Source: Octopus bimaculoides
Lineage: Eukaryota
Assembly (NCBI RefSeq): GCF_001194135.2
Contig: NC_068993.1
Location: 478,236 to 542,235, forward strand
Length of the DNA: 64,000 nucleotides
Direction of reading: 5' to 3'
A program made the translations under genes and the position numbers. Shown here in pieces: positions 13,001 to 37,800 of this stretch. The stretch's first letter is position 1. Every line of letters begins with the position of its first letter. The notes under the pieces were generated by a model. It was not told the origin of the DNA and did no database searches. It saw nothing but the letters and a program-made list of their open reading frames with translations.

Positions 13001-16000
13001 AAGAAATTCTACAATTTGTAGAAATAATGAAGGACAGAATGAAAAACATTTCTTCAAAGAATATTTTACATAGAACTGTACAAATACACCCTATAAAACT
13101 GTACAATTATTCATATAAAACTACAGTTATTCCATATAAAACTGTGCAGATATTCATATTAAACTCTAAGGTTATTCCATATAAAACTGTGCAGATATTC
13201 ATATTAAACTCTAAGGTTATTCCATATATTTGATATTAGATAAAACTACATCATTTTTTACAAATTCTATTTATAATGAGTTGACATGGAAGTCCCTATG
13301 TGGCTACTTGACTTGCTAGAAATAGCAGACAAGTCTTTAACTGCTGTCTTGAAAAAAAAAGTATGATAGTCCTTGATACACTATGTCACAAACAAAAGAC
13401 AAGATGGTCACGGATGGAACGTCTTCAATTACAGGTCAAAGTCAGTCGGCAGAGTTGCCCTAGGGGTAAATAACTTCTAGTTCTATTGAAATGGTAAATA
13501 TCAGAATATTTCTGACCACTCAGGTCATTTGACATAAAACAACAGTAGAAGGTAAGAACAGAATAAATGTTGTTAAAATGTGTGAAATAATTACTTACAC
13601 TGGAAAAAAACTCTTGGACTCTGCTCAGAATCTTTTGTAAATTTGCTGCCTGAAAAGTTAAACAGAAAATATTAACACAGGTATCAGCTGAGGTTAAAAA
13701 GTTTGCCTCACAACTTCACAGATTTGGGTGAATGTTTCTTGGGAGTGGAATTTGGCAGAAGCATAAAACAATACAAATCCTAAAGTAAAAACAATCCCTA
13801 ATTTAGCATAATTTACCTTATAAGTATTTTTCATGTAACTAGAATCCCACTCAAAGGTTTAACCTTTTTGACAATGTCTCCTTCTTTCTGATTAAAGGTT
13901 AGACATTCAGGAATGACATCAAACTGATAGGTCTTCCTTCGTTTTAATATTTATAAAAACCAGGGTGGTGCACCAGCAGAACTGTTGGTGCATTGGGCCA
14001 AATGCCTAGCAGCATTTCATCAAACGTTTGGTTACTGAGTTCAAATTCTGCCAAGGGTGATTTTGCCTTTCGTCCTTTCAGGGTCGATAAAATTAGTTGA
14101 ACACTGGGGTTGATGTAATCATCTTACTCCCACCCCTCATATTGCTGGCCTTGTGCCGAAATTTGAAATCAATATTTATATAAACCTGTAGTGTATATAG
14201 GATTATAATGGACCCTTCCACTGAGATTGATGTAGGAGCATCCAGTTGTTCAATCAACAGAACTCATTGAATTAACAACATGCAAAGTAGCTGAGTATCC
14301 CACAGACACATTTATTCTCAATGGAATCCCAGAGTAGAATCGGTGTGACAGTGTAACAAGGAGTAGCATTGAATTAGAGGGAGAGTCCATCTGACAGGCT
14401 TCTACACACTGCTTTGGACTGCCCCAAAGCTAGGGTAAAACACCATGCCTAAGTTGTCATGAAGTTGGATTGAACCTAGCATGGCTTGGTTGGGAAGCAA
14501 ACTTCTTAACTTGGCTACGCCTGCAAGCATTGTATGTGTGTGTGTGTGTGTGTACAGAGATAACTGTACAGCAGCAATTGTAGTAGTAGTAGTAGTGATG
14601 GTGACAGTAGTTGTATATAGTAGTGGTGGTAGTTGGAAGGGGTAGAAATAGTGATGGTGGTAGCGCAAGAAGTGGTGGTAAAAGAAGAAAGCTGAATGCA
14701 AAGTAAATAAAAAAAGAATAAAAAAGTGAAAAGTTACCCGTTGTTTTCTATTGTTTCCTGGATCCGAATACATGGACATCAGCCACTGGTCATGGAAGAA
14801 TTTGGGGTCACTAGGAGAGAAAAACAGAGAGAGAGAGAGAGAGAGGGAAACATTCAGATAACCTGGATGATTTAATCTATATATACATATATATATATAT
14901 ATATATACACATACAACACTAGTATAAACAGAAATCTTAATAATACTACCACGTTTATCAACACGTGTAATTCCAAAATATGTAGAGTAGTTTCTACACT
15001 TGTTGCCTCTGTGTGTGTGTGTGTGTGTGCGCGTGCGTGTGTGTGTGTGTGTGTGCATTCTACACGATTTGATCTTGGGAAGAAATTCACTAGCTTCATT
15101 ACTATTAAGTTTGGTCATGGGTGGCAAGTCTAAAATGTAAATTCATTAAAAAGTGAATGGGGCTGAAGGAAGAAAGCAGCGGGAAATAATTCTGTTTTGG
15201 AACAACTGTGAACTTGCTTCAGTCTTATGAAACCTCATCTGTGTTCCGAGCTGACTGAGAGACATGCTCTAACAAGCAGTCAACAGTCTCCCAAGATGAC
15301 TGGCAAAATGTTTGGTTCAGTCAGAAAATCCTCAAACTGACAGCTGGATATTATTTAAGGGACATATATAATAATTACACGGAGTCTTAACAATGAATTG
15401 GGCAGACAAATACACAATGAAACCTTCAGGACTTACACATATACGAGATAGTACCACTAGGTACCATACACACACACATTACTATATAGAATAGGGGAGG
15501 ACTTTAGCACCACTGGGCACTGTAGATATTGCACAGAGTAACCTCAGGTGAAACTGTCATCTATTCTGAGGGGGAGGACAAAATACACGGCAGTGGGAGT
15601 AGTGGGAGTAGCTTTTCTGATGTCCAAAGCTGCTGAATCGGCACTCATGGGATGGAAACTGGTGAATGAGAGAATCATCACAGCCAGATTTTTATTCCAG
15701 AGTCATTAAACTAACAGTCATCCACGTGTATGCACCCACAACGGATGCAGAGGATGAGGTGAAAGACACCATCTGTGAACAGCTGCAAACTGTAGTCGAG
15801 AATGTGCACAAACAGGATGTGGTTATAATGGCTGGAGATATGAATGCCAAGGTTGGAGCCAATAATAAGGAGAATGAGAGAATAATGGGTAAACATGGAA
15901 TAGGAATCATCAACAGAGATGGCGAAAGGCTCCTAGAATTCTGCAGGATGAATGATCTCATCTTTACTGGAACTATATTCCCACACAAGGACATTCACAA

Positions 16001-19000
16001 AAACACCTGGACCTCTCCAGATAAAAAAGAACAACAAATCAAATTGACCAGACACACTCATCAAATGTAAAAGACACCCGGGCCATGAGAAGTGCTGATG
16101 TTGCAAGGGATCATCAGCTTGTAAGGTCACAAGTGAAGTTCGAAACTTCGAAATGTTTGAATTTGCCCAAAATCTGACTTGCATCTGGTGTCATCTCACT
16201 CATATTGGGCATCAGTGTTCTGGGGTATGGCAAGGTCTTCAGTGGTCCAATCGGTTAGTGCTGTCTCCAGTTCCTGGGCCACAGCTGCTTTGGCCATCCT
16301 GTGGAGTATCTCACTAACGAGGGTGTAGCTGAAGGAGACTGAGGAGGAAAGACAGGCAAACAGAGCCAGGCCCAATGGGGAGCAGAGACCAAGGCCACCA
16401 AAGTGGACAGGCTGTTTAGCCTGTTGCCAGTTGGCACTGTCAAAACTAACATTGTAGATCAGCTCAGCACAGTGCCAGGGGGTGTTATCAATATCAACGA
16501 GGTAGTCTCTGAGAGGGTGACATGGTGCACTGCATAGCAAAGAAAAAAAAAAAAAGGGAGCTTGGGTAGCACAAAACATTTCCTCAAGAGGAAGAGCACA
16601 GGTGAATGTCAGTAAGGCACAAGCTGTCAGTCATCCTGGACAAGACCACAAGCTTGGTCTTCAGGAACTCCATTATGGCTTTCAGGAGAATTGGGGGAGC
16701 CAAGAATGCAGATGGCATCCTTTGGTGTCAGCTGAGCCCCTGTCAAGACAGACTGGGTGCTGAATAGGACATCCTGAAATTCAACCTCACCATAGCTCAC
16801 ATTTATCACCTCCAACTTGGACAGGATTGTCTCAAGCCTGAGAAGCTTTAGGGCTGGGATAACCTGCTGAAGATCCCGGAGTCGCATCATCCAGGTACTA
16901 GACATTGAAGGATGACTAGACTGACTAGCCAATATCAACAACAGACAATGTGAAAAGGAGCAGACCAACAGGACCACCATATGGGACACCTGGGAAAGAA
17001 GTGGTCCTGCTGTCAGCAGCTATGACTGAGCTGAGATGGATGTCAGTGGGTGTAATGAGGGGGTAGATCTTAGACATATCTTCAGGACAAGGTCATGCCT
17101 AATGCTGTTGAAGGCATTCCTGAAATCCCGCTTCAGTAGGAAGCAAGGTGATGAGGGAGATATGTGCTGTGTGTAGTGTCTGGCAGCATGGGCAGCAAAT
17201 AAACCTCATATCAGAATGGGAATCAAACAACAACAAAGACTTCCTATGATCAAATAAGCTTGTCAAGGTTAATTATTGGGGAGGATTAATTTAGCAAGTT
17301 GTTAATCAGATCAACAAAGGCTAAAACATTTTCATATATAATGACATTCTTCTTGTTAATTGATTAGTCTATCAGCAATTTGTTAATTAGAAGTGGATTT
17401 TGTTGTTGTTGGTTACTCCTTGTTCAGGTCTGATTGAACAAACTTAAGATCAAAGGTGGGATCCAACCATGACTTTCTCCCTATTTTATGAGGTCTGCAT
17501 GTAAGATAACATTATCTAATAAGTCCTTTCTTGTTTACAATAATGCCATGTGATTTGAAATAGATTTGACTGCTATTTCTAGTGACCACATACAGGCTCT
17601 ATGGTCTACTTTGTATATAATGTTGGCCATGATAACAAGATTGTATTTTAATATGTGTTGATGACAAAATACTAGGCTGTCTACCATTATTAGTTTAATT
17701 AATTACTGATGAACTAATCAGTGTATTTTGGATAATGGATTAACACATATCAGCAATGATGACTCGAATTTGTGGTTATGCTCTTTCGCACATCAAAATT
17801 GTTTGCTTTCCTTTAAACAGATGCTGGATTGGTAACGATTCTAGGCTCTAATTAAGTCAGAGCATACAACTGAAGCATGGTGTGCATATACCACCTTCTT
17901 TCAAAATGTCTTTCATAAAAATAAAACAGAATAATATTGAAATACGATTTTGTTGTATGCCTCCACATACATCCATGGTGGAAGTGGATTTATGAGAGGC
18001 AAACCACTTCCTAAACCCATTTCATCTCACAATTGGGTCCCCCACCATGCTGATGTCATCTCATATAGCTCCTAAGGTCTGCAAGGGTCTCACAAGTCAA
18101 CCCATCCACTCACAGGGCACAGCCAGGCCATCTGGACATTGGAATTTGTGATTCTGCAGGCTGACATCCATTCTCTCTCAGACAGTTATCATTACATCAT
18201 CATCACCATAAAAGTAAATTGAAATGACATAAAATAATTAATTATATCCAGTAATTATGGTTTCTAATATAGGACACAGGATCATAAACTGAATGAAAGG
18301 GATGGGCAAGTTGAATAAATTGACTCAGTACTTCACTGGTCATTTATTTTACTGACCCCAGAAGAATGAAAGTTAAAGTTGACCTCAAAGGGTGTACCAT
18401 AAGGCGTTTTCTCTGAAGTTGTAACAATTCTGCCATAATTACACGTGAACACATGACCATCTTTCATTAAACAATTTTAATTAGCACCAAGAAAACTATT
18501 GTAATTGTCATCGTTATTTTAGTATTTTCTCTATGCTAAGTGGAACTTACTGCACACGAGTGTCACTCAGCTGAGTGAATGGTGAAAACAAAAACAAAGA
18601 GTGGAACTTACATTTTATTTAAGATTTGCGACATGGCAATTCCCGTGCTTAATTCTTCCGTGTTGTGGTATGGAGCTTCAATATTGAACGTGTCAAGCTG
18701 AGGAGGAGACAAAATATTCAAGGATTAAAAAGAAAATAACAAAAATCTCCAAGGCATGCCGGCATGGGATGCAGGACGTAAAATGATGATGATGATGATA
18801 CACATCCATGTTTATGCAGACAATCAAGCTTGGCATAGTCTTCTGATTTGCCAGCACCTGTCAAACTGTCCAACCCATGCCAGTATGGTAAATGGATGTT
18901 AAATGATGACTGCGATCACACACACATTATTATCCTCAATTTATGCCAGTTGTTTCTTCTTCTTCTTCTTCTTCTTTCCATGCTGGCCTCCCCTGGTCTT

Positions 19001-21907
19001 TTCTAGTCACTCTGTCACGGTCCATATGTTATCCAGTTCACACAACAGCAACAACAGAGAGAAACATTCACACAAGCACATGTATAGAGCTCACCCTAAC
19101 AATGAATTTTGAACAGTTTATGTCCATCAAATTCATTCACAAGGTATTAATTGGTTCAGGGCTATAGTAGAAGACACTTAGACAAGGCGCTGTGCAGGGG
19201 GATCGAACCTGAAACCACAGGAGCCATGCCTGTCTGTTTACTCATCTCATTTTTCCCCCCTCTGCTGACATATCTACTGAGTTCTCCCAAAGGCACAAAA
19301 CGTCAACATTTTTTTTCAAGGAGAGAGGGCAGAGTCAATTAAAATTACTTTTGGTTCCTGACATATTTATTCAGACCTATATTGCATGGTGAGTTTTACA
19401 AGTGACTGTTCTTTGCTAGCACAAATGCTGTTCCCATCACAAAGCACTCCATTGTTAGCTATTTATTCTTAAGCTAAATATAACAAACAATTGAAGGAAA
19501 CAATACAATTATTTGAATGTCATAACTATATGTCATAGTTATATGTACATAAACCTATGAAAGCCAGAAATTCCTCACGGGTAAAGACAGATTTAATAAC
19601 TCCTTCACCACACTGACTATTTCCAATTCCTACTTTTTAAAGTTTAAAATAGTTTTTCCTTGTAATGTAATCTCATACTAAAAAGATTAAAATGTCTGCA
19701 TCTTAAAAATGTCACATGACTTGGAAAAAAAAAAGAGATTATTTTAGAATGAAACTAATGTATATTTTACAAACAGAGATTTATAAAACATGAACTTTAA
19801 CCAGGTGTATCACCAAGTTGAGAATTTAAACATTTTTAAGGGGAGGTGTGAGAGGAGAAAAAAATTAAAATTTATGGGGGGAAAAAAAAACTAAAAAAAC
19901 ACAAACTATTTGATGACGTGTGCAAATGGTTACATTTCTCACAACTAGGAACAAACTGGACAATAAAAAACCATCACCATCATCATCATTATAATCTTAT
20001 ATCCAGATTTTAGCGACGAGAGAAGTTAGATAGATTATCAGTCCAAGTGAATTGTTATCCAGAGTCACAGTCCTCAGCCACAATTTAACCTCGATCCAGC
20101 AGACTTAGGACTGATCCTCTTCTGCACATAGTCATCGTTTTGTCTGTTTTTTTTTCAGACATAATATAAAATATATCCTTCATTTTATTTTTTAAAGCTA
20201 GTAATGTGTGATCTAAAAGAGATTCAGCTTGTGTTTCTAGCAGTTTATAGAGACAGCCTCCTCTATAAGTTCCTTGTTGATAGATTCATGGACTATATCT
20301 TGTATAAAGGACAAAATGCCAAAATTCTTCAAGGTTGTTAATACTAATAATAGATTATCAACAGATTAGTGCTGCCACAAACTGCTGCATTCATGACTAA
20401 GTGAAACATATGTTTAGTTAAACACACTTCAATGTCCAATAAAAGTGGGTCACTTTCAATTCTTTCCCCGCTTCTCAAAACCAGTTTTCGCTCTCAAATA
20501 ACAACGGCTGTTTCATTTACTTAAGGTTATTAATGTTTCTGGGAAATATAAATGAACATCACAACTTCTCAATTCATCCTCAATAACAAGGAGACATCTT
20601 CTAAGTGGTTGCTTGACTTCGTAAAAATAGCAACCAAATCCCCCTCAAACCACACCCTACTATCTTAATATAGGACATTTTGGATGATGTACTCCAAGAT
20701 ATACTATGTTAAAAAAAATGGAACAATCAAACTATGGAATGCCTGTGATCATTGTAAATCAACATAACCAGGGTAGATCATTGGGTTAAACGATAACATC
20801 TGAGTCTTATTTGTAAGAAATCATACTTAAATTTCATCTTCTAATCATCATCATCATCATCATCATCATTTAATGTCTGTTGTCCATGCTGGCATGGGTT
20901 GGACAGTTTGACCAGAGATGGCAAGCTGGGGAGATGCACCAGGCTTCAGTCTGATTTGGCATGGTTTCTATGGCTGGATGCCCTTCCTAATGCCAACCAT
21001 TTTACAGTGACACAGAATACCTATCACTTTCTATCTCTCTACAAGTAAATTAATGGATAGTTTTCGCTTCTCTCTCTCATAAATATTAATCTTTATAATT
21101 GATTATAAATATAGAAACAATAAAAAGAGTTGAAGAAACCAAGTGGGATTTCTGACATTTTAAAGAAAATCTGTTGGAACAGGAAAAACATTTTTCTTTT
21201 AAAAAAAAAAAAACTGTTTATTCTCTTTGATGATGGTCTTTGACCAAAACAATACAATCTTCATCTCCATCCAGCATAACAAATTTATTCCAATTTCTAA
21301 ACTTTGGTTCTAAAAATACAATTGTCCAAAAACAGTCTTAATGACAGATCTGTCTGGTGGATGAGGAGTGACTTGGGACAACAACACAATGGAGTGATCA
21401 TAGGTGTTTTTGGTGTGCTAGAGATGGTCCAGGGCTGAACAAGAGAGGATGGTCATGGCTCTCACACACTTGGTCTGGGTGGATTGGGGCTGACCTGGTG
21501 CTAAACAACAATGATAAGACAGAATGGTCATATCATAAATCTGTTTAGTAGATAGACCTGGCATTTGTCAACATAGACAAAATACACAGAACTTTTCCAA
21601 TTCCAAACTGTTACCATTGACGTTTAGTCTGATATCTGTGGGGAGAATGTCAGTATGGAAGCACAAAGGTTTGGGTAAATGGTCTCGTGTAAGGTTTATT
21701 AGAAGGACAGGAATTGTGGTAGTGGTGGTGGTAGTGGTGGTAAAGAGAAGATAGAGCATTTTAATGTACCAGTGGCTGTAATGTTGGTCAGTGAAGGTTT
21801 GCCTGAATATAACAGTGTGAATGAGAGAAAAGGAAAGAGAGAGAGAGATGACTGTACCAGTCTCTGTAGTGTGTTGGTCAGTGCTGATTTGTTTGTAAAT
21901 ATAACAG

Positions 21908-21954
<47 letters not shown>

Positions 21955-24900
21955 CACAGTGTTTGCGTAGTGTTATGTTGGTCAGTGAAGGTTTACCTAT
22001 TTTGGTGATGTGTAATAGCTTCACTGTCTCAGAGAAGTGGGTAAACATTCTAATGTAGGTTATACTTGTGGCTTACGAAGAGTAAATAACTCTTCACAGC
22101 TGAAGAACAACTTGACTTTTCAGATGCTCAACCGGATACAGATGTGTGTTTTCTTCTATTCAGTTTATTGTAATTTTCTGTCCCTTTAGCAAATAATTAT
22201 TTCTATGTTATTACTTTAACCAAGACATGGTAAAATTTCAAAATCTTGAATCTGTTCTAGTTGCAAACTTGTGAAGTTCTTGGATTGATTCCTCACCATT
22301 TAATGTCAGTCCAACCCATGCTGACATGGGTTGAATGGTTTGACAGGAGCTGGCAAGGTCGGAAGCTGCACCAGGCTCCAACTGTCTGTTTTGGCATGGT
22401 TTTTATAGTGGGATGTCCTTCTTGATGTCAACCACTTTATAGAGTGGACTGGGTGCTTTTTATGGGGCACAAGCACTGGTGAGGTCTGTCTTTTTTTTAA
22501 TTCTAAAATTAAAACAAAGTTCTTTACTGGACACTTCCCTCATTGGTTGTGAATTCAAAGAATAATGATAAAAGACAGACTAATAAGTCCTTCATCTTGT
22601 TTATTCCAAAGTTTGTGCTTTTAACTCTGGTTCTACTGATATATGGTATGACCAACATACTCAGCAGAGCTTGCAGTTCCAATTAGCCGAAAATTCTGTT
22701 AATCTTCATTTCTATGTCAATAAATGTAAATCACTGCCATCATGATAATACAACCAAACACTGATGTACCCCCTCCACCTACCCTTACACTCCTCTACCT
22801 CCTCCATATAAATATTTCTTTCTTTATTGCCCACAGGGGTCTAAACATAGAGGGGGCAAACAAGGACAGGCAAAGGGATTAAGTCAATTACATTAACCCC
22901 AGTGCATAACTGGTATTTATTTAATCGACCCCTAAAGGATGAAAGGCAAAGTCGACCTTGGCAGAATTTGAACTCAGAACGTAATGGCAGTCAAAATACT
23001 GCAAAGCATTTTGCCCAGCATTCTAACGATTCTGCTAGCTCGCCATCCTCCATATAAATTATTGATGTCTTACTATATGATAATGTTCTCATTAAGAATT
23101 CATGTTAATCCTGATCCTCGCCTAAAAAACAAAACAAAATACTAATCTTCTTCTTGCTGCTGCTGCTGCTGTTGTCTACCAGTTATACCTCCACACCCAT
23201 TTCTGATGGTTTAGGACAGCTTCCTCCTCCTCCTGATGGCCAATCCTGCTGAAACAAGCTTCTCTCTCTTCCTGAGGCAGGAATTGGACCATCATTTATT
23301 TATAACTTCAGCCTATGTTTTGCTCTAATTCTTCCATCATCACTGCAACAACAGCAACAACAGCAACAACAGCAACAATAACCAATCATGATAGAACAAC
23401 AGTCAAACGCAACCAGAGGGAGATTATTTAATGGCATTGCATGTGTGTGATCAAAGCCGTTGGCACAATGCCTCTATGCTATAATGATTCGGAAGAGCCA
23501 CTCTCAGAAATGATTTGTCCTTAATCTAACATTAAACCATAACATCACTTTAAAACAAAACCCAAACAAACAAGGTGCTGGCTTACTGTAAATGTCATTG
23601 TTGTTCTTAATGTTGTTGCTGTCATAGGAAGATGTGTTCTATGAGAAATAGAGAATTGAAGGGTTTAGAGATGGAATTATAATCTGCAGAGAAGAATGAC
23701 ACAAATACTATAATATCAGAGGTAAGATGATCAAAATAAGATTATATAAAACTAGCTTAAATAGCCAGACTCCATGCAGACTTTTAGCCTAGATTCATTA
23801 GTGGAGCTGGGCTAATTGGGCTTGTGGATCAAAACATGACTATAATGACTACATGCCCTGGTGGTGTTTGATCAGAGGTTAGAGGCAGATGAGAATTTAT
23901 TCTGGAGTGCAATCATTCCCAGTCCCTAAGTTGAATTACAACTGTAGGCCAGTTTGTCCCAAGGTTCTTATCTTGACGCAAAATTAATGAAATGAATGTC
24001 TCAGATTTTTTTCTTCAGGAAAAAGTTGAAAGAGAAATTGAAGAAACAGTAGAATTTTACAAAAAAGAATGGCTGCAACTATAAGAAATGCAAGATCTGG
24101 GAGCTTCTTATGTGAATAGGAAGTGGTAAAAGGGGGGGCTCTATATTCAAGGGCTATAGTAGAAGACCCGTTATGCAAAATGCTACACAATGAAACCAAA
24201 TGCAAGACCATATGTTTGGGAAGCAAGCCTCTTAACCACACACACATGGTAAGGCTACGATCAGAGTATTAAATCTATTTCACAAGGTTTCTACATACCC
24301 CACCCCCATCCTCCCTTGTTTTCAACAATGTTGCTACAGAAAGAGAGATTTGACATCTCAGTCCAGCACCAAACTGTGTCTCCTCCACATTGGGGCATGG
24401 CTGTGTGTGCGAAAGTAATTATAGTTATATAAGAATATATATNNNNNNNNNNNNNNNNNNNNNNNNNNNNNNNNNNNNNNNNNNNNNNNNNNNNNNNNNN
24501 NNNNNNNNNNNNNNNNNNNNNNNNNNNNNNNNNNNNNNNNNNNNNNNNNNNNNNNNNNNNNNNNNNNNNNNNNNNNNNNNNNNNNNNNNNNNNNNNNNNN
24601 NNNNNNNNNNNNNNNNNNNNNNNNNNNNNNNNNNNNNNNNNNNNNNNNNNNNNNNNNNNNNNNNNTCCTAACGCCAACCACTCAGAGAGTGTAGTGGGTG
24701 CTTTTACGTATATATATATATATATTATATATATATACAACTAAACACTGTAGGTAGGACCTCCCAACATGCTAATTGTGATGCTGGGGATGGTGGTGGT
24801 GGTGGAGTTGCTTAACCTATGGGGAATGTAAGAGTGATTTTAGGGAGCAAGAAATAATAATTTTACTTCAAAATCTAAAATCTAAACAAAAGTCCCTGGT

Positions 24901-27320
24901 TCTTGAATTTTGGTTCTGCAATGATAAGCAGAGACATGGATGGTTGTAACAGGTTGCTTTCTGATGTAGTAGGGAATGGTTTGAGAGAGTTTAGCTGCTA
25001 CTTTTGAAAAAATCAAACGACCCTGCAGAGCAGGGGTCTCCAAAGTGGTCGATGGGACTATTCAAGGGAGTCGATGGTCTAAAAAGTTTGGGGACCCCAG
25101 CTGTAGAGGTTCCGTCACTGGTTCATTAGAGATCCCAAGGTTTTAAGGTGGAGTGCAAACAGAAACACATGATGAGTCATTGATTCAGATTAAAGAATGA
25201 AAGAGGAAAATGTGGAGGAACCGTTGGAGCTCCAGTTGAGCTCTGATTGTGCAGAAAAGCCATAGGGTGTGTGATTTGGGTGGGGGGGAGATACCCTGCT
25301 ATTTCTAGCAGGGCACCCCCTAGCATTGACTTGAAGGTTTCTGGTCTTCAATTAACAAAAACAAAGCAAACCAAATCTAATGGTTGTTTAGCCCTAGATC
25401 AATCCTGATCAAGCAGACCTATGGTTACATATATTTCAGCAACGACTGTCTCATGTCCTTCGTATTTTTAAGATAGTAAAGCATCATGTAAGGGATTTTG
25501 GCTGGTATTTTTAATAGGTCCATTGGCTCCTCTGTTACCTCAAGAAAATGTAACTAGGGTGCAGTGAAAGGGTCAGTCTACAGCATCAGATGATTTTCTA
25601 GGAGAGAGAGAGAGAGGGGGGAGGTTCTAATAAACATCCCTGTATATATGAACGAGACTAAAATATTTCTTATAAAGCAAGAAATATATATTGACATATT
25701 TCAATAAAAGTCTGTTAATAATAAATTGGATAATTTTTGTTTTTGCTGAAATAATTCATGTGTAAATCTTTTTCTCCAACCATGTCCCATAAATATAATA
25801 ACTTATTGATGAGTCTTAAGAACAGAGAACCTTGTGTTGCCATGGTATGTCACTTCTATAGTCTTTCTCTCTCTCTTCTACATATTATGGCAAATCGACT
25901 CTCTCCATTCCTCTCTCTACAAACTTTAAATGTTTGACGAAGAATTTAGGTGACTGACTGACGCACACACACACACACAGAGTTTTGATTAGTCTTGATT
26001 CTGAGAAAAGTATACGAATGTAGAAGAAAACTAAGCAAGTGGAAAGTCGACTGAAAAGTATTTTTGACAGATGTACAATTTTAGAGAGGTAAACGAAGTC
26101 GACGCTTTATATAAGTGGACGAAGGGACGTTGATTAGCTGCTGGTCAACCCTCAGTAGAGGCATGATCAAAACATTCCAGCCATGACCATCCTCTCTTGG
26201 ATCACATCATGTAGTCGAGTGTGATGTGAGGGCGATTAGCATCACAAGGAAATGATTAAGAAAATGAAACAGTAAACGACTTGATGATATTCCTTAAAAT
26301 TACCGTTATTTGAAACAAAAAGCGTATTAATCACTGATTGATGACATGAAGAGGCACTTCAAAATATTTTAGTTAACAGAAGGGATTTAATACGAGAAGT
26401 GTTTTAATAAAACATTATATAAGAGCAAGTTATTTCCTCAAACCATCAAAAAAGCGCCAGCACCACCAAAGAGAAATGTCATCATACAAACAACACAGAA
26501 ATTCTATTTATAGCTGCCACAATTAAATAAATATGGAATTTTATCGAAAACAAAACGAAGATTCAGTAAATATTTGTCTATGAGAGAATCGTCTGTTGAA
26601 ATGCCACGTTCTTGGAGTTGTATTGATGACAACCCACGAGAAATATTGGACTTGGTGAAAGATCTGTCAAGATATGCGAAAATCAAACCCAATAACAGCA
26701 GATTCTATGAAATGGCAAAATTATATCTAATCTATCTATCTATCTATCTGTCTATCCATCTATCCGTCTATCTATTTATCTATCAACCTATCTATCTTTA
26801 TATACGATTACGAGAATTACCATTTATTAGGGTAGGTCATAATTAACAGCTAATTCGTAGAACAGTGAAATATTCAAAGAGAAAATAGTTCCAAAAATGG
26901 TAATTTGGATCAATGGTAAGACACTAATATGATTGAGTGTTTATAAAGTAAATCTAACGTTTGTGTGCCTTAAAACTATGTACACAGTTGCTAGGAAGAC
27001 TAATAATGGGTGGTACTTTGATGTTTCTAGAGACAAGATTTGACGATCTATGGACAAGATTTATCAAAAAGACAGTAATTAAGAGAATAACATTGCTTTA
27101 AATTTAGTTTCTATGAAATGACAGATTCTGAATTTGAGTATTTTAAAAGAATGTCAATCTAATTTAATTCTAGATGAATAGATCAAGAAAGAAAACGGCC
27201 AAAAAGTTGAGTAAGCAAATGTCCAAAGTCTATAAAAGAGAGAAGAGAGATTGTGTAATTAATAATAATTAAGCAACTTACCCATTTAATTAACATTGAA
27301 TAAGAGTAGGTTCGGTCCAT
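1414..27320 (-). CDS. HOOK: Protein Hook homolog (HOOK1/3-like dynein-dynactin adaptor), 5' part; gene continues beyond the left edge
   Basis: 12 GT-AG exons join in frame (915 nt): MDRTYSYSMLIKW-LDTFNIEAPYHNTEELSTGIAMSQILNKI-DPKFFHDQWL...-AANLQKILSRVQEFFSS-LPNLRNRGFPLPDINAI-AETSSMKELVSFLQLILVCAMYC...IMEMEESVQQVVMQLLKE-...-TPAGRRCQQLQRQTERLQEEVLKLES-...ADEARSLKDEVDELRY. This matches the recalled HOOK N-terminal CH-like domain and first coiled coils (e.g. HOOK3 MLQLILGCAV, MEESVQHVVM, PAGRRHLQLQ, EAQSLKDEIDVLR). Confidence 0.95.
1745..1809 (-). CDS. HOOK: HOOK exon 11 (ARDNCIARLDIMTEEFRDLQQK), 65 nt
   Basis: gttaacag acceptor, gttatt donor, phase 1 to 0. Confidence 0.88.
2142..2221 (-). CDS. 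HOOK: HOOK exon 10 (TPAGRRCQQLQRQTERLQEEVLKLES), 80 nt
   Basis: tttgcag acceptor, gtaaga donor, phase 2 to 1. Confidence 0.94.
3250..3344 (-). CDS. HOOK: HOOK exon 9 (MTSLQDEKITLSSEVDRLSERLNQAENLDDP), 95 nt
   Basis: ttgttag acceptor, gtaagc donor, phase 0 to 2. Confidence 0.93.
3845..3928 (-). CDS. HOOK: HOOK exon 8 (LRRTLDELRNVKEANEELTKRCHFLDEQ), 84 nt
   Basis: tttcttcag acceptor, gttagt donor; resembles HOOK3 EEIAQRCHELDMQ. Confidence 0.93.
5244..5303 (-). CDS. HOOK: HOOK exon 7 (NFDPEDNVDGSYQLGRADDQ), 60 nt
   Basis: catttttag acceptor, gtttgt donor, phase 0 to 0; fills the linker between flanking conserved exons; little sequence conservation. Confidence 0.8.
5352..5450. repeat. (GGT)n-(GT)n microsatellite
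   Basis: Direct reading; one of many dinucleotide tracts in the window. Confidence 0.95.
9233..10013. other. Assembly gap (further gaps: 24443-24665, 35385-35668, 49017-49375, 53908-54728, 55845-55915, 61568-62251)
   Basis: Runs of N, mostly flanked by microsatellites or repeats. Confidence 0.99.
11119..11264 (-). CDS. HOOK: HOOK exon 6 (AETSSMKELVSFLQLILVC...MQLLKE), 146 nt
   Basis: ctcgtttag acceptor, gtaaac donor, phase 1 to 0; LQLIL motif. Confidence 0.95.
12188..12239 (-). CDS. HOOK: HOOK exon 5 (LPNLRNRGFPLPDINAI), 52 nt
   Basis: ctttccag acceptor, gtaag donor, phase 0 to 1. Confidence 0.92.
13126..13228. repeat. 45-bp minisatellite, about 2.3 copies
   Basis: gttattccatataaaactgtgcagatattcatattaaactctaag repeated exactly at 13126 and 13171, partial third copy, degenerate units upstream. 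Confidence 0.9.
13599..13649 (-). CDS. HOOK: HOOK exon 4 (AANLQKILSRVQEFFSS), 51 nt
   Basis: cttttcag acceptor, gtaagt donor, phase 0 to 0. Confidence 0.93.
13965..14175 (+). mobile_element. tRNA-derived SINE, family B
   Basis: ctgagttcaaattctgcc...ttttgcctttcgtcctttcagggtcgataaa...actggggttgatgtaatc, shared with copies at 22840, 29900, 41970 and 50205. Confidence 0.8.
14738..14810 (-). CDS. HOOK: HOOK exon 3 (DPKFFHDQWLMSMYSDPGNNRKQR), 73 nt
   Basis: ctctcctag acceptor, gtaact donor, phase 2 to 0. Confidence 0.93.
15520..16150 (+). mobile_element. Decayed RTE-type LINE fragment, AP-endonuclease domain
   Basis: ERIITARF, TVIHVYAPTTDAEDEVKD, VVIMAGDMNAKVG, NRDGERLLEFCRMNDL, FPHKDIHKNTWTSPD, ADVARDHQLV; frameshifted. 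Confidence 0.9.
16195..17200 (-). mobile_element. Decayed CRE-clade-like non-LTR retrotransposon, RT domain and downstream region
   Basis: AAHAARHY...LLKRDFRNAFNSIRHD, GVPYGGPVGLLLF (cf. GVQQGDPLGPLLF), YLDD at 16886-16897, ILGSP, WQQAKQPVHFGGLGL (cf. WxQAxLPxxxGGLG); several stops and frameshifts. Confidence 0.75.
18612..18697 (-). CDS. HOOK: HOOK exon 2 (LDTFNIEAP...QILNK), 86 nt
   Basis: ctcctcag acceptor, gtaagt donor, phase 0 to 2. Confidence 0.95.
20845..21010 (-). mobile_element. RTE-associated SINE/LINE 3' tail with (CAT)n
   Basis: (cat)n ttaatgtc...ccatgctggcatgggttggacagtttgacc; related copies at about 18780-18900, 22295-22485 and 47980-48035. Confidence 0.65.
22840..23048 (-). 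mobile_element. tRNA-derived SINE, family B
   Basis: Reverse-complement match to the 13965 and 50205 copies. Confidence 0.82.
25031..25100. mobile_element. 70-bp hAT (Charlie-like) MITE
   Basis: 16-bp imperfect TIRs (CAGGGGTCTCCAAAGT versus reverse complement CTGGGGTCCCCAAACT, 13/16) and 8-bp flanking direct repeats ctgcagag/ctgtagag, resembling the NTCTAGAN Charlie target. Confidence 0.8.
27282..27320 (-). CDS. HOOK: HOOK coding exon 1 (MDRTYSYSMLIKW)
   Basis: ATG at 27320-27318; ends TGG|gtaagt in phase 0, at the conserved W of the HOOK N-terminus. Confidence 0.85.
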
Positions 27321-28470
27321 TCTGTCAGTTTATTGACAATGTAGTCAGTTTAATTCTTTTGTAGACTAATATATATTAAAGTATAGAGTTATTAGCGAGC
27401 ATCCCTGGAGGTTTTTATGATTTCAAGACGTTTTGTGGAAGTCGACGATTTGGCTGATGACAACGACCTGTTAAATGTATGGAGTATTAACTTTGTCATA
27501 AACATTACTTCACACAACAAGATACAACATCAATACTGACTTCATGTTACCAGTAAATAGATATAAATATCAAAATGATGTAAAAAATAATAGCACATAG
27601 ATTTATGCTTTTGTATTGTATTTAAACATTTTTCAATACTTGTATGAAAGCTGACAGAATATATTGCACGAGAAGCTTTCCGTATTTTTTCGTCAGCCTG
27701 AAATGAAGCAAATATAAAAGAAAATAAAAAGGTTGTTTTTTCAAGGGAGATAACTGTAGCGAGTTCCGTTCTGACCAAAAACCGAAGACTTTCAAGTTTT
27801 GGGGTAGAATTATTTATTAATCATCGTCTTAATTCATTGAATATCTCTCTCTCTATATATATATATATATAAATGGCTATTGAACTACTTTATTAGTTTA
27901 TAGAGCTTATAATCAGTTGTAAACTTGGCAACAGAAACTGAAAATGTTAGTAGTTTGTTGTTTGAGCAACTTATGTTTTGTAGTAAACAAGACTTTGTGT
28001 AAATTACAAACTTATTTTGTCACAATGTTATAAATATTTAACTTATTTCATATATTTCTCTTACAGAGATGTTGTTTATTAAGGAGTTTAAAATATTTTA
28101 TATTTTTTAATACTAAATGTCAACAAGGTGTTTGCTCAAAGAAAGTTGCAAGTTTAAATAGTGAGGAGAAAGTTTTTCTATTTCTGACAAGTCTTTCTAA
28201 TTAAACGTGTCACAAACGATGTTCTCTTGTCATTCACAGCGTTTAATTAAAGACAAAACTTGACAACTTTCTTTCTTTACATTTTACAAAGCCTTTTAAT
28301 GTCATTCTCCTTGCCGTTTTCTGGACCAGTTTGTAAAATAAATTGAAGCTATAAATTTAATCTACAGTTGGTTTATAATTACTGTAAAATTAGAAACCTA
28401 TTTCTTCTAAACCTGTAAAGCAACACAGTTCTGAAGTTCTTTCTACTGTTTCTTCTCTCTTGGATTAGAA
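27321..28470. promoter_or_regulatory. Putative bidirectional promoter and 5'UTR region shared by HOOK and RNF170
   Basis: Only 1150 nt separate the divergent start codons. It must hold both TSSs plus an RNF170 5'UTR intron (acceptor at 28467-28468). TSS positions cannot be read from the sequence. Confidence 0.7.
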
Positions 28471-28577
28471 ATGTCATCAACTTTCCTTGAAGGCGTTGGC
28501 GATGAAGTCATCTATGCATGTCTCCTCACTATATTGCCATTCATTCTAATTACAATTTTTGCGACCATGAAAAAACG
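28471..28577 (+). CDS. RNF170: RNF170 coding exon 1 ([35 protein letters not shown])
   Basis: ATG sits 2 nt after a pyrimidine-rich acceptor (ttcttctctcttggattag, ending 28468), implying a 5'UTR intron; donor gtgagc, phase 2. Confidence 0.9.
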
Positions 28578-31500
28578 GTGAGCTATTGTCACTTTATATA
28601 AGTTGATAGTAAAAATAACTGATTCATTTCTGTTGTTAGTTCATTTCATAAATAAACATCTATTAATATTTCATCGTGCACTCCTTGCCTCGCCCTCAAC
28701 TTTTATAACACATCTGCCCACATTTTACTTTAATATAATTATGCATCGGTAGGTATCTATTTTCGGCCTGCTAGGGGAGTACTACACATCTGCCAAAGAG
28801 GGTAATTTTCCGGATAATACTTCCTGCTCTTGCACTTCCATGATATATTCTGGTCATCAACCTAGATATGTGATCAACAGAAACGACCAGAAAGTTTCTG
28901 CATCTATTTTTTGAGTAATAATTATTCGGTTCAGCATCATACTAGTGTAAAACGTGTCTACGTGGATGATCCTCTCATCATTTTGAAACCGATAGATATC
29001 TCAACTTCTTCCTTAACAAAAATGTCTTGATTACCTCACACACTTATTCTCAGTTTGACAAAAATATATTCTGCCGGACTGACGGTTCTGCATGAAGAAT
29101 CTTGATTCTCAGATTCCTTGTTTTGAGTGGCCTGACACTTCCATGAATGTATGTGCGTGTGTGTGTGTGTGTGTGTGTATATATACACATACATATATCT
29201 ATGTGTGTGTTTACATATGTATGTATGCATTTCGGTGATGTATTTCTTTGACAAGTGATTTGATTTGATTTCATGTATTAAATAACTGGCAGAAGAATCA
29301 GGAAAACCATTTTATATAACACACGCACATTCTTTAGTTTTATGTCTTGATTAGTATTATGACAATAAAGGGTTATCGAAATGTATTTTATACTGGAAAG
29401 GAGTGTCAGAAATTGTTCTATACTATAAAGGGTTGTCAAAAGAACGTTTTTAGACAGCATCGTCTGAGACAAGGTGGATCAAGGCTGTAATAGCTTTGAT
29501 CCTGGACCTGCTTGATCTGGGTTGGAACTGGAACAACAACAAGAACATTTTAAATCATATATATATATGATTGATGGCAGCGGTTCGACGAGTCTTACCC
29601 AGAACAGTGTTTACCATTTATTGTGGTGCCTTGTCTGCCTTCTGAGTTCAGTCATTTCCTCCCACCTCTTCCTTTTTTACAGGTTCTTTCTCTTTGGATA
29701 ATTTGGCCCCTCTTCATGCACATCAACATTTCCTTACCTGTACAGTTTTCTCTTTTGCCACAACTGATTTGGTGCACATTTTTAACCCCAGATCACTTCT
29801 TTGAGAAAGAACACAAAAACCACAGCCAAATATTGCTATTAGATGTTGGTTTTAATCATTTCATTTTAATGTTACAAATTACAAATATTGGTTTCCAATT
29901 TTGGCTCAAGGCCAGCAATTTTGGGGATGGGGGATGATGGAATTGACCCTGAAAGGATGAAGGGCAAAGTTGACCTGGCAGCACTGAACTCAGAATGTAA
30001 AGTCAGAAGAAATGCTGCTTAGCATTTTGTCCAAAGCAGTAATGATTCTGCCAGCTCATTACCTTCTACTAATTACAAATATTACCAAAATCAGTCACAA
30101 ACATTTTAACCATTTCAAGTATATTGTCATAATTGTGAGAAAAAAAAAAAAAAAACTTTGAGACTCTTTTATTTTTTATGCTTTAACCTCGTTTTGCAGG
30201 TGTTTGAATATTTTGGTATTTGTTGTTCTGAATGCTATTAATAATTTGGGATTCAAAATGACTGAAGTATCTTTTCGATGATGTCTTGATTAAAACCAAA
30301 AATAAATATGTTAATGTCTTGTCTGTTTCATTTATATTTTAGTTATAACCATCAAATAATCCATCCTGATAGTCTAGAAAATGTTCAAACTGCCCGAGAA
30401 CACTTGAACCGTGTCCCTATAAGCAATCCTAATCGAAGACAAAATGAATCGAATTGTCCTGTTTGTCTTGATGATCTTTCTTTTGGAGTTGAAACAAATT
30501 GCGGTCATGTATTTTGTGGTAAGTCAAATTCCAGATCACATTTTACAGTCTGCTTTTAATGATATAATCCAAACTCACAGACAACTGATGAAGATAATGT
30601 ATATTTTTGTCTTTTCCTGGCTGACCCTCAAGCCCACTCGCCTTGAAGTTTCTCTCGGGTGGTCTACCTCATCTTGCATGTTTTGCAGGTGATGTGACAG
30701 CCAATTAAAGTAAATGCAATTAGATAAAAATAAATGATTTGTTGTTTGTGTTTATAAATGGAGAAGGGTTAAGTGTTTATGTAATTAAGGGCAGGATTAA
30801 TGTTTACAGCTTAGCTTATTAACTGGATTAAGAAGATTTTCGTTAGTCAATATAATATTGATCAGTTAGGTTAGATTTTAATAAACAACACTATTGATTA
30901 GATATATTTATTAAATTTTGATAATCAATACTGCATTGATTTCTAACTTTAACCCTAGGCTACATATTGAGGAGGTGGGGTACAATGGTGGGGAGTAGGC
31001 ATTTCTATTCTCATTCCATTCACATTTTGGTATTTTGTGAGGTAGGCTGGAAGTATAGTTCATGAAATCCACTTGTAATTATCAAGTATTTTATATTCTC
31101 ATTTATAGTGTATACCCATATCTTTTTGTAGCAGCTACCCTTATTTACAGTTGTACCTTTATCATTTATAACATCTACCCTTATAATTTATAGTATGTAT
31201 CTTTCTTTAGAGAGTACACCCTTATTTATTGTATCTACCCTTACAACATTTTGTCCTAATAGTTCAGCTGTTTATGGTGGTTGTTATTGTTTTTAGACAC
31301 TTTTATAGAGAAGTGGGTGGGGGATGGGGTAACCCCAGGTCTGCTCTGTAATAGAGACAAACCTATAACCAAAGGCATTCCAGTGATGACCATCCTGTCT
31401 TTTATTCAGGACTATATCATTCAATATCTATTTTCCTTTTAAGACAGAAGGGAAATAATTTAAAGGGGACAAAGCTGTTGTTTTTAACATTTCCAGTGAG

Positions 31501-31759: not shown

Positions 31760-33605
31760 AAACTATGTCTACATACATACATACACATCCATATATACAT
31801 ACATATATACACATATATATACACATATATACCCATTGTTTACTTTTAGCTAGCTGCATCATTGCTTACTGGCATTATGGATCATGGCTAGGTGGAATTA
31901 AGTGTCCGGTTTGTAGGCAAAAGGTAAGTTTGACTACAGAACGGATTCCATTTTTGACATAAAACAATTGATTTATTGTGTTGAAAATTGTTGAAAAAAA
32001 GCTGAATTTAAAGATATTCGTAAACGTTGAAGTCATCAACTTCTCTTGTATCAGTTATATTTTAAATTTATTTTTTTATGCAAAACAATATTTTCTAAAA
32101 ACAAATCATTAAGTTGGTGTTAACGTAGCTTGATTTAGTGAATCAAGAAGGTTTTATATAATTAGATTGTTAATTATAGTAATTGTTAATTATAGTAAGT
32201 TTATTTTTTTTTTGCCCAGTACAATGTGACTTAAAATGCTAAAAGCTTAAAAAAGTTTAGCCATCAGTCACAGACGAGTATGACGTGATAGCTTGGACCA
32301 GACTTTGGCCATTTGTTTTGGGTGTTTTATGTAGTTGTGGGTCAACATAGATACCTTGTTGTCCCTCCTTCACTTGACTTTGCTGAGCATGAAGGAGAGA
32401 GTGAGAAAGCTGCCTCAGTGTATGACTGTTACTCATTTACAGCTGAGTAGACTGCAGCAACATGAAATAAAGTGCTTTGTTCCAGGATACAGCATGCTGT
32501 TGAATTCAGGAATTGAACCTATAACCTTATCTTTAGGCTGCACACCTTCACAGAAAATATAATGACCTCCCCGCTCCAATAATATATATTTTATCATTTT
32601 GTCTCTTTTGCTTAAATACTCAAATATAATGTTACCTGCCGCTAATATTTTTCTATTGAATTATAAACCTGTTGTGCATTGTATACATTAAGCTCAGTGT
32701 TGTAATTCTTAAATGTTGAATAATGAACTCTTGGCCTATAAAGGCAGGGGAGGCAACTCCAAATATGTTTGAATCGAATGTAAGATGCTTAGATTTTTTT
32801 GTATTTGTCACATTCTTTAATGATGCTTTGCTATGACTCATTCCTGACGGACTCTGAATTTAATTTCTTTTTAGGTTACTCTTTTATTACTTTGTTTCAC
32901 CGATGCAGAAACTCGTTCTACGACACAAGAACGAGCTGATATACTTAATCAAATTCATGATTATAATCGAAGATTCTCAGGAGAACCTCGATCTGTAAGT
33001 AATTTTCAAACATTTACACTTTCAAAACGTCGTGCGTTGTTTTAGTCTCGGGTTTGTTCATGTTTGTATTTCTTCTTATACGGACTATGGTCTTTGCAAA
33101 GTTAACTTTTGAATTTGGATGTTGCTTCCACTCCTAGAATTTCTTTTCTAATTCTGCTATACAAACAAATTCATCTGTCTTAAGGGGTGAGACAACTTGG
33201 TTCTAAACATTGTCTTCACAGACACACATGTAAGATTGTGTGTGAGTGTATCACTACATGTATATATTTATTGATGTATTCGATTCCCTTCCAGCTTTTA
33301 ATTCTTCAACACTTAATGCTTATTTTCTGTTACAGATAATGGACTATCTCAATGATATCCCAACTCTTCTACGACACTGTCTACAAGAACTTTTCTCATG
33401 GAATGGACTTATGATAATATTTCGTATGCGAATTACGATCTGTGCCGTATTTGGGATATGTTATCTTATTTCACCATTAGATATAATTCCTGAAGCTGCT
33501 TTCGGTTTGTTTGGACTCTTAGATGATGTCTTTGTTCTTTCTTTGATGGTTGTTTATATTACAATTGCTTACAGGGAACTGGTGGCCAACCGCTTAGGGG
33601 GTTGA
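28471..33605 (+). CDS. RNF170: E3 ubiquitin ligase RNF170 (ER membrane, C3HC4 RING); complete, 5 coding exons, 248 aa
   Basis: Exons 28471-28577, 30343-30518, 31850-31923, 32875-32994 and 33336-33605 total 747 nt. N-terminal EGVGDEV plus TM helix; [49 protein letters not shown]; [12 protein letters not shown]; C-terminal [22 protein letters not shown] motif. All are characteristic of RNF170. Confidence 0.97.
29900..30062 (-). mobile_element. tRNA-derived SINE, family B (partial)
   Basis: gaccctgaaaggatgaagggcaaagttgacc...gaactcagaatgtaa matches other copies. Confidence 0.75.
30343..30518 (+). CDS. RNF170: RNF170 exon 2 (IHPDS...CPVCLDD...TNCGHVFC)
   Basis: tattttag acceptor, gtaagt donor, phase 2 to 1. 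Confidence 0.95.
31850..31923 (+). CDS. RNF170: RNF170 exon 3 ([24 protein letters not shown])
   Basis: cttttag acceptor, gtaagt donor, phase 1 to 0. Confidence 0.95.
32875..32994 (+). CDS. RNF170: RNF170 exon 4 (VTLLLLCF...[12 protein letters not shown])
   Basis: tttttag acceptor, gtaagt donor, 120 nt. Confidence 0.95.
33336..33605 (+). CDS. RNF170: RNF170 last coding exon ([14 protein letters not shown]...RLGG*)
   Basis: gttacag acceptor, 270 nt to TGA. Confidence 0.96.
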   Translation: MMDYLNDIPTLLRHCLQELFSWNGLMIIFRMRITICAVFGICYLISPLDIIPEAAFGLFGLLDDVFVLSLMVVYITIAYRELVANRLGG

Positions 33606-34870: not shown

Positions 34871-37800
34871 CTGAAAAAGAGAAGATATTAATGAAGTGAA
34901 AGATTAGATTGGTTAGGTATTAGTTATCTTGAGTCACTTCATAAAATTAACAGCCATCATTCAGGTTGAATTTCTGAGAAAGACATTAGGGAACACGACC
35001 ATCTCACTTAGCATTAAACTGTTTGCTCTGTATATTCAATTGGTCAACGTTTGCTATAAGTAAACCTGCAGTGGTTTTTTTTTTTCCACTTCAGTAACAT
35101 TGATCAGCCTTTGACTGTAACAGCACGAACTCCACTGATGGGAGCCAGGCAGGAGCATTGAAAGGGACAAAGTCAAGTCAAACATTCATAAACAAATAGG
35201 AGTTTACAGTTTATACCTATTCTTTTCTTTTATTCTTTTACTTGTTTCAGTCATGCTGGAGCACCGGCTTTCGTCAAACAAATCAAACCCAGGAATTAAT
35301 CTTTGGAAGCCGAGTACTTATTCTATTGGCCTTTTTGACGAACCACAAAGTTACGGGGACATAAACACACTAGCATCAGTTGTCNNNNNNNNNNNNNNNN
35401 NNNNNNNNNNNNNNNNNNNNNNNNNNNNNNNNNNNNNNNNNNNNNNNNNNNNNNNNNNNNNNNNNNNNNNNNNNNNNNNNNNNNNNNNNNNNNNNNNNNN
35501 NNNNNNNNNNNNNNNNNNNNNNNNNNNNNNNNNNNNNNNNNNNNNNNNNNNNNNNNNNNNNNNNNNNNNNNNNNNNNNNNNNNNNNNNNNNNNNNNNNNN
35601 NNNNNNNNNNNNNNNNNNNNNNNNNNNNNNNNNNNNNNNNNNNNNNNNNNNNNNNNNNNNNNNNNNNNTATATATACGACAGGCTTTTTTCAGTTTCCGT
35701 CTACCAAATCCACTCACAAGCCTTTGGTCAGCCTGAGGCTGTAGTAGACGACACTTGCCTAAAGTGCCATGCAGTGGGGCTGAACCCAGGACTATGTGGT
35801 TGGTAAGAAGCTACTTACCACACAGCCACTCCTGCACCTATGAAGAATTTTCACTTGATAGACATTAATGTATTCAAGGTGGAAGAAGATAATTGCTCCC
35901 AAGTGCTTTAGCACTTGGGAGCAATTGTTCCGTTACAGGGTTCTGCTGCTAAGAGACATGTTTCATTAGCAGAGTATTCTGCTGAAAGTATTCGAGCCAT
36001 TTGTGAGATCCTCCTGTCATTCCATCAATATTGGAGATCTGGAAAAAGGAGTTCTACTTTTCTTTCTGTGCCAAAGCTATTAAATAAATCAATCAAAATT
36101 AAAACGTCCAGTTCTATCAAAAAGTATTCATCCATGTCACAAGAAGTCTTTTTTCCTCTGAAAGATTTATTCAACTGCTTAATCAAGTCTGCACATTGAA
36201 CACCTAATCCCATTAAAATCACATGGATTAAATGACCACCAGGTTGAACCACAGGACAGCAGCAAATATGCCAAGTTTGCAACACTACAATATGAATACT
36301 GTTCAGTAACTTTGTTCTATCAATCCTATTTACTTACATGTTCAACACAATAATCTTTAATCTCATCTTCACTGCATTCCACGCCTTCCTTCAGTTGAAT
36401 GCTTGCACACACGTCTTCTCCCATTCGTTGATCTGGTATCCCAACAACCTATAAAATATGAGATTTAAAAAGAGAGAATGCTTAATAAACTGTACCACTT
36501 CCTCTGAGTTCTTCTACAAGTATTTTCTGCAGACTCCTTTAGTGTTGCTCATAATATAGGACTGGAAATTCTACTGAAAGCTTGTTTGAAGTCTGATTTA
36601 ATGGTCAATCCTCAAATTGGTGATGTTACCCCCCACTAGAAGTTTTCCTCAATACCTCCTGTTGTCTTAACGAAGGAAGGACACAATAGATAATGTCAAA
36701 CATTGCACTATGTATACTCTGAATAAAAGAGATGGTCATTTCTGGAACGTCTTTGATGATGAGTCTTCTCAATCATGGCTAATTTCATACTAAACAACTC
36801 TGTGAATGATCAACTGACTGAGCCACCGATCCTCAGTGGAGGGTAACTGATGACAGGGTGACAATGTGGTGTTGTCAGATGACAGGATACTGGATGTCGC
36901 TGTGTAGCAGACATACCTGACCCATCTCTTCATCAAGAAAATAAATGTTATGGTAGCAATCACTGTATCAGTATTGGAATGATTAGACATAAATTTATTG
37001 AACTAATATAAATATCAGGCTGGGTAGTTAAAGAAGTTTGCATCTGTGCTCTTGGATTCAGTCTCACTTGTGCAGTACTTTGGGTGTCTTTTTGCTACAG
37101 CTCAGACCAACCAAAACCTCTTAAGTAAATTGGGTGGCCGGAAACTGAAAGAAGCCTGTCCTGTATGTGTACATATATATATGCATGTTTACCCTTGTCT
37201 AAATATCACATAATGGTTGTAAATGAGCATCACCCTCATACAAGTGAGGTTGGTTGTTATCATTCTTCTGGGGAAATACTATTTCGCTTGGATACAGTTG
37301 AGGGTTGGTGACAGCTTGGGCATCCAGCCATAGAAAATCTGCCTCAAGAAATTCTGTCTGGTCCTTGCTTGAAAGTGGATATTAAACAATGGTATGAGAT
37401 GCTGGATCTGATAAGGGACCACAATGAGAGGTGAGGCTGTGCAGGAGGGTTTGTGTCCAACACGTGCCTGCATAGAAGAATGAGGATTGATGTGAATAAT
37501 TACTGTAATTTTAAAGCAACAATAGATTGATGCTAATTAGAAGATAAACAGTGGAAATTGTATAAGGATAAATGTTGCATACCTGAACTTCCTTCACTTT
37601 AGGATGTTTGTAGAGCAAGGTTTCGATTTCACTGGGATAAATATTTTCACCTCCTCGAATAATCATGTCTTTGATTCGGCCAGTTATTTTGCAGTAGCCA
37701 TTCTCATCCAAAATGGCAATATCACTGCAATGAAGATACATTTTCATGAAATTATAATTCCTTTTTGAAACATGGATGTTTTAATCAAGGTTGGAATTCC

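Follow-up and report, generated by a model that had tools for sequence, protein, structure and literature searches.

A divergent HOOK-RNF170 gene pair in Octopus bimaculoides is shared with other bilaterian animals

We analyzed a stretch of 64,000 nucleotides (nt) of the Octopus bimaculoides genome (NCBI RefSeq assembly GCF_001194135.2, contig NC_068993.1, positions 478,236 to 542,235 of the forward strand; hereafter the window, whose own coordinates are used below), in which the genes HOOK and RNF170 lie head to head. The same two genes were found adjacent and in the same orientation in a chiton, an annelid and a hemichordate, and they are on record as a divergent pair in human. These results support the presence of the linkage and its divergent orientation in the protostome-deuterostome ancestor. 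The octopus locus is probably a copy of this ancestral bilaterian 5'-5' pair, with a spacer that would contain a compact bidirectional promoter region guarding the linkage.

The divergent pair in octopus and other bilaterians

HOOK (minus strand, ATG at 27320-27318) and RNF170 (plus strand, ATG at 28471) are arranged 5'-5' on opposite strands, as read directly from the sequence. The start codons are separated by 28471-27320-1 = 1150 nt, the value given by an earlier sequence-only reading of this DNA. That reading had also put HOOK intron 1 at about 8.6 kilobases (kb), and the length held, as exon 2 starts at 18697 and the intron measures 8584 nt. The same head-to-head layout, with 1161 nt between the ATGs, is found in the independently annotated genomes of O. 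vulgaris (OX597826.1) and O. sinensis (CM016871.1), whose HOOK genes encode 716 and 723 amino acids (aa), respectively, with both HOOK_N and HOOK domains. The DNA of the window is approximately 85-91% identical to that of the two species.

Exons in the window were located by tblastn, for which human HOOK3 and RNF170 sequences served as probes only. Pfam analysis of the concatenated minus-strand exons returned HOOK_N (1e-29) followed by the HOOK coiled coil (2e-13), so the domain order of the HOOK family of dynein-dynactin activating adaptors, an N-terminal HOOK (CH-like) domain and then the coiled coil, is present. The gene extends past the start of the window, and the exons within it cover the N-terminal part to about residue 310. 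Octopus HOOK is the single invertebrate pro-orthologue of vertebrate HOOK1/2/3.

The five-exon model of RNF170 has canonical AG/GT splice sites throughout and encodes 248 aa, of which 246 are identical to the O. vulgaris protein annotated as 'RNF170-like'. RING models matched residues 71-122 and DUF1232 matched residues 196-230, the latter above the Pfam cut-off. The translation of exon 1 reads as a hydrophobic N-terminal stretch, which by reading alone is a putative transmembrane helix. Identity to named invertebrate RNF170 proteins was 44-54% over at least 97% of the length, and identity to most vertebrate RNF170 entries was 47-51% over at least 98% of the length. Judged by these similarities, the octopus protein is the predicted orthologue of RNF170, a RING E3 ligase of the endoplasmic reticulum (ER) membrane. 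Mammalian RNF170 ubiquitinates activated inositol trisphosphate (IP3) receptors together with the ERLIN1/2 complex; a corresponding activity of the octopus protein would be an assumption by orthology only.

The layout could also reflect an artefact of assembly or annotation, namely a mis-join or a false HOOK first exon. The window contains several gaps filled with N, and HOOK exon 1, with 39 nt, is too short for similarity search alone to detect. This explanation is nevertheless very improbable. The stretch at 27.0-28.7 kb contains no gap and is collinear with the assemblies of two further Octopus species, the same exon 1 was called by independent annotations, the 13-codon exon and its donor are kept in three other phyla, and the only alternative HOOK-like open reading frame (ORF), at 22997-23065, sits in a dispersed repeat.

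RNF170 orthologues from protein searches were traced to their genomic loci in other animals, and the 10-kb flanks and annotated neighbours were examined, the flanks being checked by tblastn. In every positive locus (Octopus species, the chiton Liolophura sinensis, the annelid Owenia fusiformis and the hemichordate Ptychodera flava), HOOK was located directly upstream of RNF170 in 5'-5' orientation (Table 1). The Ptychodera gene had no Pfam record and was identified as HOOK by tblastn. HOOK exon 1 consists of exactly 13 codons ending in TGG (Trp) immediately before the GT of the donor in octopus, chiton, Owenia and Ptychodera, and the position of the first HOOK intron is thus deeply conserved.

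For human, the sequence-only reading had stated that the two genes are adjacent and divergently transcribed, and the literature agrees. A clinical paper gives the gene order THAP1-RNF170-HOOK3-FNTA (PMC4527799), and RNF170/HOOK3 is catalogued among divergently paired genes with a distance of 211 base pairs (bp) between transcription start sites (TSSs) (PMC3815023 Table S1). Conservation was confined to the pair itself. The neighbour on the far side of RNF170 is an AMP-binding gene in octopus, BSMAP in Owenia and THAP1 in guinea pig.

Table 1. Features of the HOOK-RNF170 locus in the octopus window and equivalent features in other animals
Feature	Position	Strand	Description
HOOK exon 1	27282-27320	minus	39 nt, 13 codons, ATGGACCGAACCTACTCTTATTCAATGTTAATTAAATGG then GTAAGT donor; reads MDRTYSYSMLIKW; 100% identical in O. 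vulgaris
HOOK intron 1	18698-27281	minus	8584 nt
HOOK exon 2	18612-18697	minus	LDTFNIEAPYHNTEELSTGIAMSQILNK...; starts at 18697 after a clean ...ctcctcag acceptor
Further HOOK exons (approximate)	~14740-14809, 12183-12215, 11116-11250, 3833-3925, 3252-3344, 2137-2220, 1429-1500	minus	tblastn alignments
Spacer	27321-28470		1150 nt between ATGs; GC content 0.29, CpG observed/expected ratio 0.67, AT-rich
RNF170 exon 1	28471-28577	plus	107 nt, 35 residues + (R), then GTGAGC; LEGVGDEV motif; 100% identical in O. vulgaris
RNF170 exons 2-5	30343-30518, 31850-31923, 32875-32994, 33336-33605 (including stop)	plus	RING finger and DUF1232 region
Liolophura sinensis (chiton) pair		HOOK minus, RNF170 plus	HOOK 705 aa; 346 nt between ATGs
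Liolophura HOOK exon 1	9616-9654 of retrieved locus L011		Equivalent of window 27282-27320; peptide MDREHLCDSLIKW
Owenia fusiformis (annelid) pair		HOOK minus, RNF170 plus	HOOK 714 aa; 200 nt between ATGs
Owenia HOOK exon 1	9762-9800 of retrieved locus L009		Equivalent of window 27282-27320; peptide MDRDHLCQSLLTW
Ptychodera flava (hemichordate) pair		HOOK minus, RNF170 plus	HOOK 710 aa; 605 nt between ATGs
Ptychodera HOOK exon 1	9357-9395 of retrieved locus L010		Equivalent of window 27282-27320; peptide MSSIELCESLMIW

Age and retention of the pair

The spacer presumably holds both 5' untranslated regions (UTRs) and the divergent promoter region, in which case the two octopus TSSs would be less than 1150 nt apart. 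In the invertebrates that retain the pair, the spacer measures 200-1161 nt between ATGs, a range set beside the human TSS-to-TSS distance of 211 bp, and a short spacer in all retaining species agrees with how bidirectional promoter regions are generally understood. On this sequence evidence, we propose that the core promoters of two broadly expressed genes closely abut or overlap in the spacer. Neither a breakpoint nor a large insertion there would leave both promoters intact, and rearrangements that separate the genes would therefore be removed by selection. The very small size of the target would independently make breaks rare. Co-regulation of HOOK and RNF170 may occur, and retention would not need it.

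The surroundings of the octopus spacer are inflated. HOOK intron 1 spans 8.6 kb, a short interspersed element (SINE) and a fragment of a long interspersed element (LINE) lie nearby, and insertions at the kb scale differ between Octopus species. A spacer that has not grown beyond about 1.15 kb beside expanding introns argues mildly for selection against spacer insertions. The combination of NRF1, ETS and YY1 motifs is typical of vertebrate bidirectional promoters. The 200-nt spacer of Owenia (positions 9801-10000 of its retrieved locus) contains, within 60 nt, a perfect NRF1 palindrome TGCGCATGCGCA, an ETS/GABPA site ACTTCCGG, which is one of two ETS-like sites in this spacer, and a YY1-like site AATATGGC. 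The chiton spacer carries a partial canonical set, ACTTCCG and a CACGTG palindrome. Across these species, the spacer has kept its architecture while its sequence has turned over.

Several observations weigh against an ancestral pair held together by its promoter region. In the octopus spacer, the motif scan detected no canonical bidirectional-promoter motif, and the spacer is not a CpG island. No k-mer was common to the octopus, chiton, Owenia and Ptychodera spacers above shuffled expectation. The octopus spacer is 90.7% identical to that of O. vulgaris, which is not distinguishable from the 88-91% of the neighbouring introns; the three Octopus species have diverged too little for footprinting of the spacer to be informative. 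The 3' side of RNF170 is equally compact in octopus, the coding end of the AMP-binding gene lying 1148 nt from the RNF170 stop codon in O. vulgaris, so that the 5' side does not stand out by compactness alone. In the scallop Pecten maximus, a Tctex-1 gene lies 7.2 kb upstream of RNF170, and no HOOK exons were found within 10 kb on either side of RNF170. RNF170 of the sea anemone Nematostella vectensis is head to head with the gene for phenylalanyl-tRNA synthetase alpha (PheRS-alpha), with 305 nt between the coding starts (OW051985.1; positions 9695-10001 of retrieved locus L013). The arrangement is thus dispensable, as Pecten and Nematostella illustrate. Neither an annotated gene nor a HOOK-like exon was found within 10 kb upstream of RNF170 in the starfish Asterias rubens, the scorpion Centruroides vittatus and the sponge Sycon ciliatum.

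The absences in Asterias, Centruroides and Sycon are weak evidence because the guinea pig (Cavia porcellus), in which the pair is expected from human, was also empty, its annotation showing no gene in the 10 kb before the RNF170 ATG (positions 1-10000 of its retrieved locus). The empty guinea pig flank is presumably due to a long intron in the 5' UTR. Since the human TSSs are only 211 bp apart, neighbour checks by coding-sequence coordinates can miss true bidirectional pairs. In the species that scored negative, a regular-expression search of the 10 kb upstream of RNF170 revealed no 13-codon HOOK exon 1 missed by the annotation; this is a weak test, which recovered three positive controls and missed O. 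vulgaris. A protein search with the concatenated HOOK exons yielded only two weak matches and no HOOK position for Pecten, Asterias, Centruroides, Sycon, Nematostella or guinea pig, where linkage at a distance is therefore indistinguishable from no linkage.

The sequence-only reading had proposed that linkage and orientation predate the protostome-deuterostome split, and had named as evidence to the contrary an unlinked pair in bivalves, annelids and amphioxus. The proposal is borne out by the pair in Octopus, Liolophura, Owenia, Ptychodera and human, together with the common 13-codon exon 1. The loci examined do not show the contrary pattern: Pecten has lost immediate adjacency, but the annelid and the hemichordate keep the pair. 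Independent origin of the head-to-head arrangement in cephalopods, chitons, annelids, hemichordates and vertebrates might be suggested by the patchy distribution, as the bivalve, starfish, scorpion, cnidarian and sponge loci either lack the pair or show no sign of it within 10 kb. We regard such convergence as exceedingly unlikely. By our own estimate, at approximately 15,000-20,000 genes per genome, the chance of acquiring a given divergent 5' neighbour is about 1e-4 to 1e-5 per lineage, and five origins of the same divergent adjacency with sub-kb spacing are not credible, so that the pair must have been present in the protostome-deuterostome ancestor. Loss of adjacency is, moreover, the usual fate of neighbouring genes, which makes patchiness expected, and several of the absences are weak for the reason given above. 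The most economical reading has the pair originate on the bilaterian stem and disappear later from some lineages. The pair appears to be bilaterian rather than older, since RNF170 is paired with PheRS-alpha in Nematostella and has no HOOK within 10 kb in Sycon; an older origin with loss in these two lineages is possible. In octopus, the pair has survived the reshuffling of the coleoid genome.

An ancestral adjacency could also have been retained passively, with a few-hundred-base spacer that is rarely broken, two independent promoters, and no selection on co-regulation or linkage. This 'small target' model is a serious rival, though a clearly less probable one than a promoter region that guards the linkage. 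Wherever the pair is kept, the spacer is tiny; it shows no promoter motif common to the phyla, and its conservation within Octopus is not in excess. A scallop has lost the pair with no evident ill effect, and Nematostella does not have it. To our knowledge, the HOOK and RNF170 proteins have no functional link. What speaks against purely passive retention is that the octopus spacer stayed short despite the repeat-inflated introns around it. Furthermore, conserved 5'-5' pairs as a class exceed controls in co-expression and in conservation of orientation (PMC3514665). A promoter region that guards the linkage therefore remains the preferred explanation.

The putative shared promoter and putative co-regulation of HOOK and RNF170 put forward by the sequence-only reading are plausible. 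Selection for such co-regulation is speculation, as is a functional coupling of IP3-receptor turnover with dynein transport. A stronger version, in which the pair would be a bilaterian-specific regulatory unit whose single compact bidirectional promoter fixes the expression ratio of a dynein cargo adaptor and an ER ligase that tunes IP3 receptors, is improbable. If it were true, it would imply that the turnover of ER calcium channels and the transport of organelles along microtubules are linked in an unrecognised way, and would explain the survival of the pair through coleoid genome scrambling.

Neighbouring sequence in the octopus window

The window is AT-rich and has runs of N at approximately 9000-10000, 35400-35700, 49000-49400, 53900-54700, 55700-55900 and 61500-62300. 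The first of these interrupts the HOOK gene, where an exon may be concealed. In the middle of the spacer, at approximately 27846-27872, is a (TC)n(TA)n microsatellite whose length differs by 10 nt from that of its counterpart in O. vulgaris and O. sinensis. Scans of the octopus spacer against Rfam and for repeats revealed no Rfam family and no notable repeats. A CGAAATATGG match between the Owenia and Ptychodera spacers was set aside, being not common to the other spacers.

A candidate alternative first exon of HOOK at 22997-23065 (minus; MEDGELAESLECWAKCFAV; tblastn E = 8.6) was rejected because it is part of a dispersed repeat and terminates at a stop codon with no splice donor. The repeat in which this ORF sits is SINE-like and has a second copy at 14039-14067 (plus). 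The ORF reads MEDGELAESLECWAKCFAVF, which mimics the N-terminus of HOOK, in the repeat context ...GTTCAAATTCTGCCAAGGTCGACTTTGCC..., and the likeness is by chance. Another ORF, at 15666-16070 (plus) in a GC-richer stretch at 15-17 kb, looks by eye like the endonuclease of a retrotransposon without long terminal repeats (...VIHVYAPT...GDMNAKVG...), and is probably a LINE fragment within a HOOK intron.

Within RNF170 intron 1, positions 29143-29215 (plus) gave sub-threshold Rfam matches to mir-297, mir-466 and mir-1277 (48 bits versus a gathering score of 90). They probably reflect low-complexity sequence rather than a microRNA. Downstream, the AMP-binding (acyl-CoA-synthetase-like) gene, convergent with RNF170, extends on the minus strand from approximately 34700 to at least 40621, with exon-like ORFs at 37511-37747, 38287-38499 and 40391-40621.

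Comparison with known gene pairs

About 600 conserved ancestral microsyntenic pairs (CAMPs) have been described, mostly of the 5'-5' type and enriched for spacers of less than 1 kb and for co-expression (PMC3514665). HOOK-RNF170 belongs with them by its properties, being an adjacency of non-paralogous genes that is found in protostomes and deuterostomes in conserved orientation. A literature search found no paper on the deep conservation of the pair, and the pair was absent from the microsynteny supplements searched, the CAMP list of Irimia et al. being unchecked. HOOK-RNF170 is therefore a new or at least unremarked member of this class, the human pair itself having already been catalogued.

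The closest counterpart is human RNF170-HOOK3 at 8p11.21, which consists of orthologous genes in divergent orientation with a very short separation. Vertebrates have three HOOK paralogues, of which only HOOK3 keeps RNF170 as its neighbour, whereas octopus has a single pro-orthologue. In mammals, as represented by guinea pig, the RNF170 ATG is separated from the common start region by more than 10 kb, while both octopus ATGs lie within 1150 nt. The pairs also differ in their flanks, with THAP1 in mammals and the AMP-binding gene in octopus, and the AT-rich octopus spacer without a CpG island is a further difference from the human pair.

Nematostella RNF170-FARSA resembles the octopus locus in that RNF170 forms a tight divergent pair. 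Its partner there is PheRS-alpha and not HOOK, and this cnidarian therefore lends no support to a HOOK-RNF170 pair that predates bilaterians.

Among 5'-5' CAMPs, HSPE1-HSPD1 (PMC3514665) is likewise composed of unrelated, divergent genes with a short spacer, which are paired in protostomes and deuterostomes and have stayed so for more than 550 million years. HOOK-RNF170 also shares with CAMPs that the pair alone, and no larger block, is conserved. The products of HSPE1 and HSPD1 are partners in one complex, the pairing of the two genes extends outside animals, and their bidirectional promoter has been demonstrated by experiment. For HOOK and RNF170, no functional link is known, their pairing seems restricted to bilaterians, and their bidirectional promoter is putative.

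The value of HOOK-RNF170 is that of a clean, checkable case in which two genes have remained neighbours for over 550 million years and through the heavy reshuffling of coleoid chromosomes. Its very small spacer (200 nt in Owenia) suits the question of whether such pairs persist through common promoter elements or through a small target for breakage, and the pair also lends itself to asking how the sequence of a bidirectional promoter can turn over fully while the architecture is fixed. It does not represent a new kind of system. With hundreds of comparable pairs known, HOOK-RNF170 is a tidy example of its class rather than a surprise, and is of modest interest.

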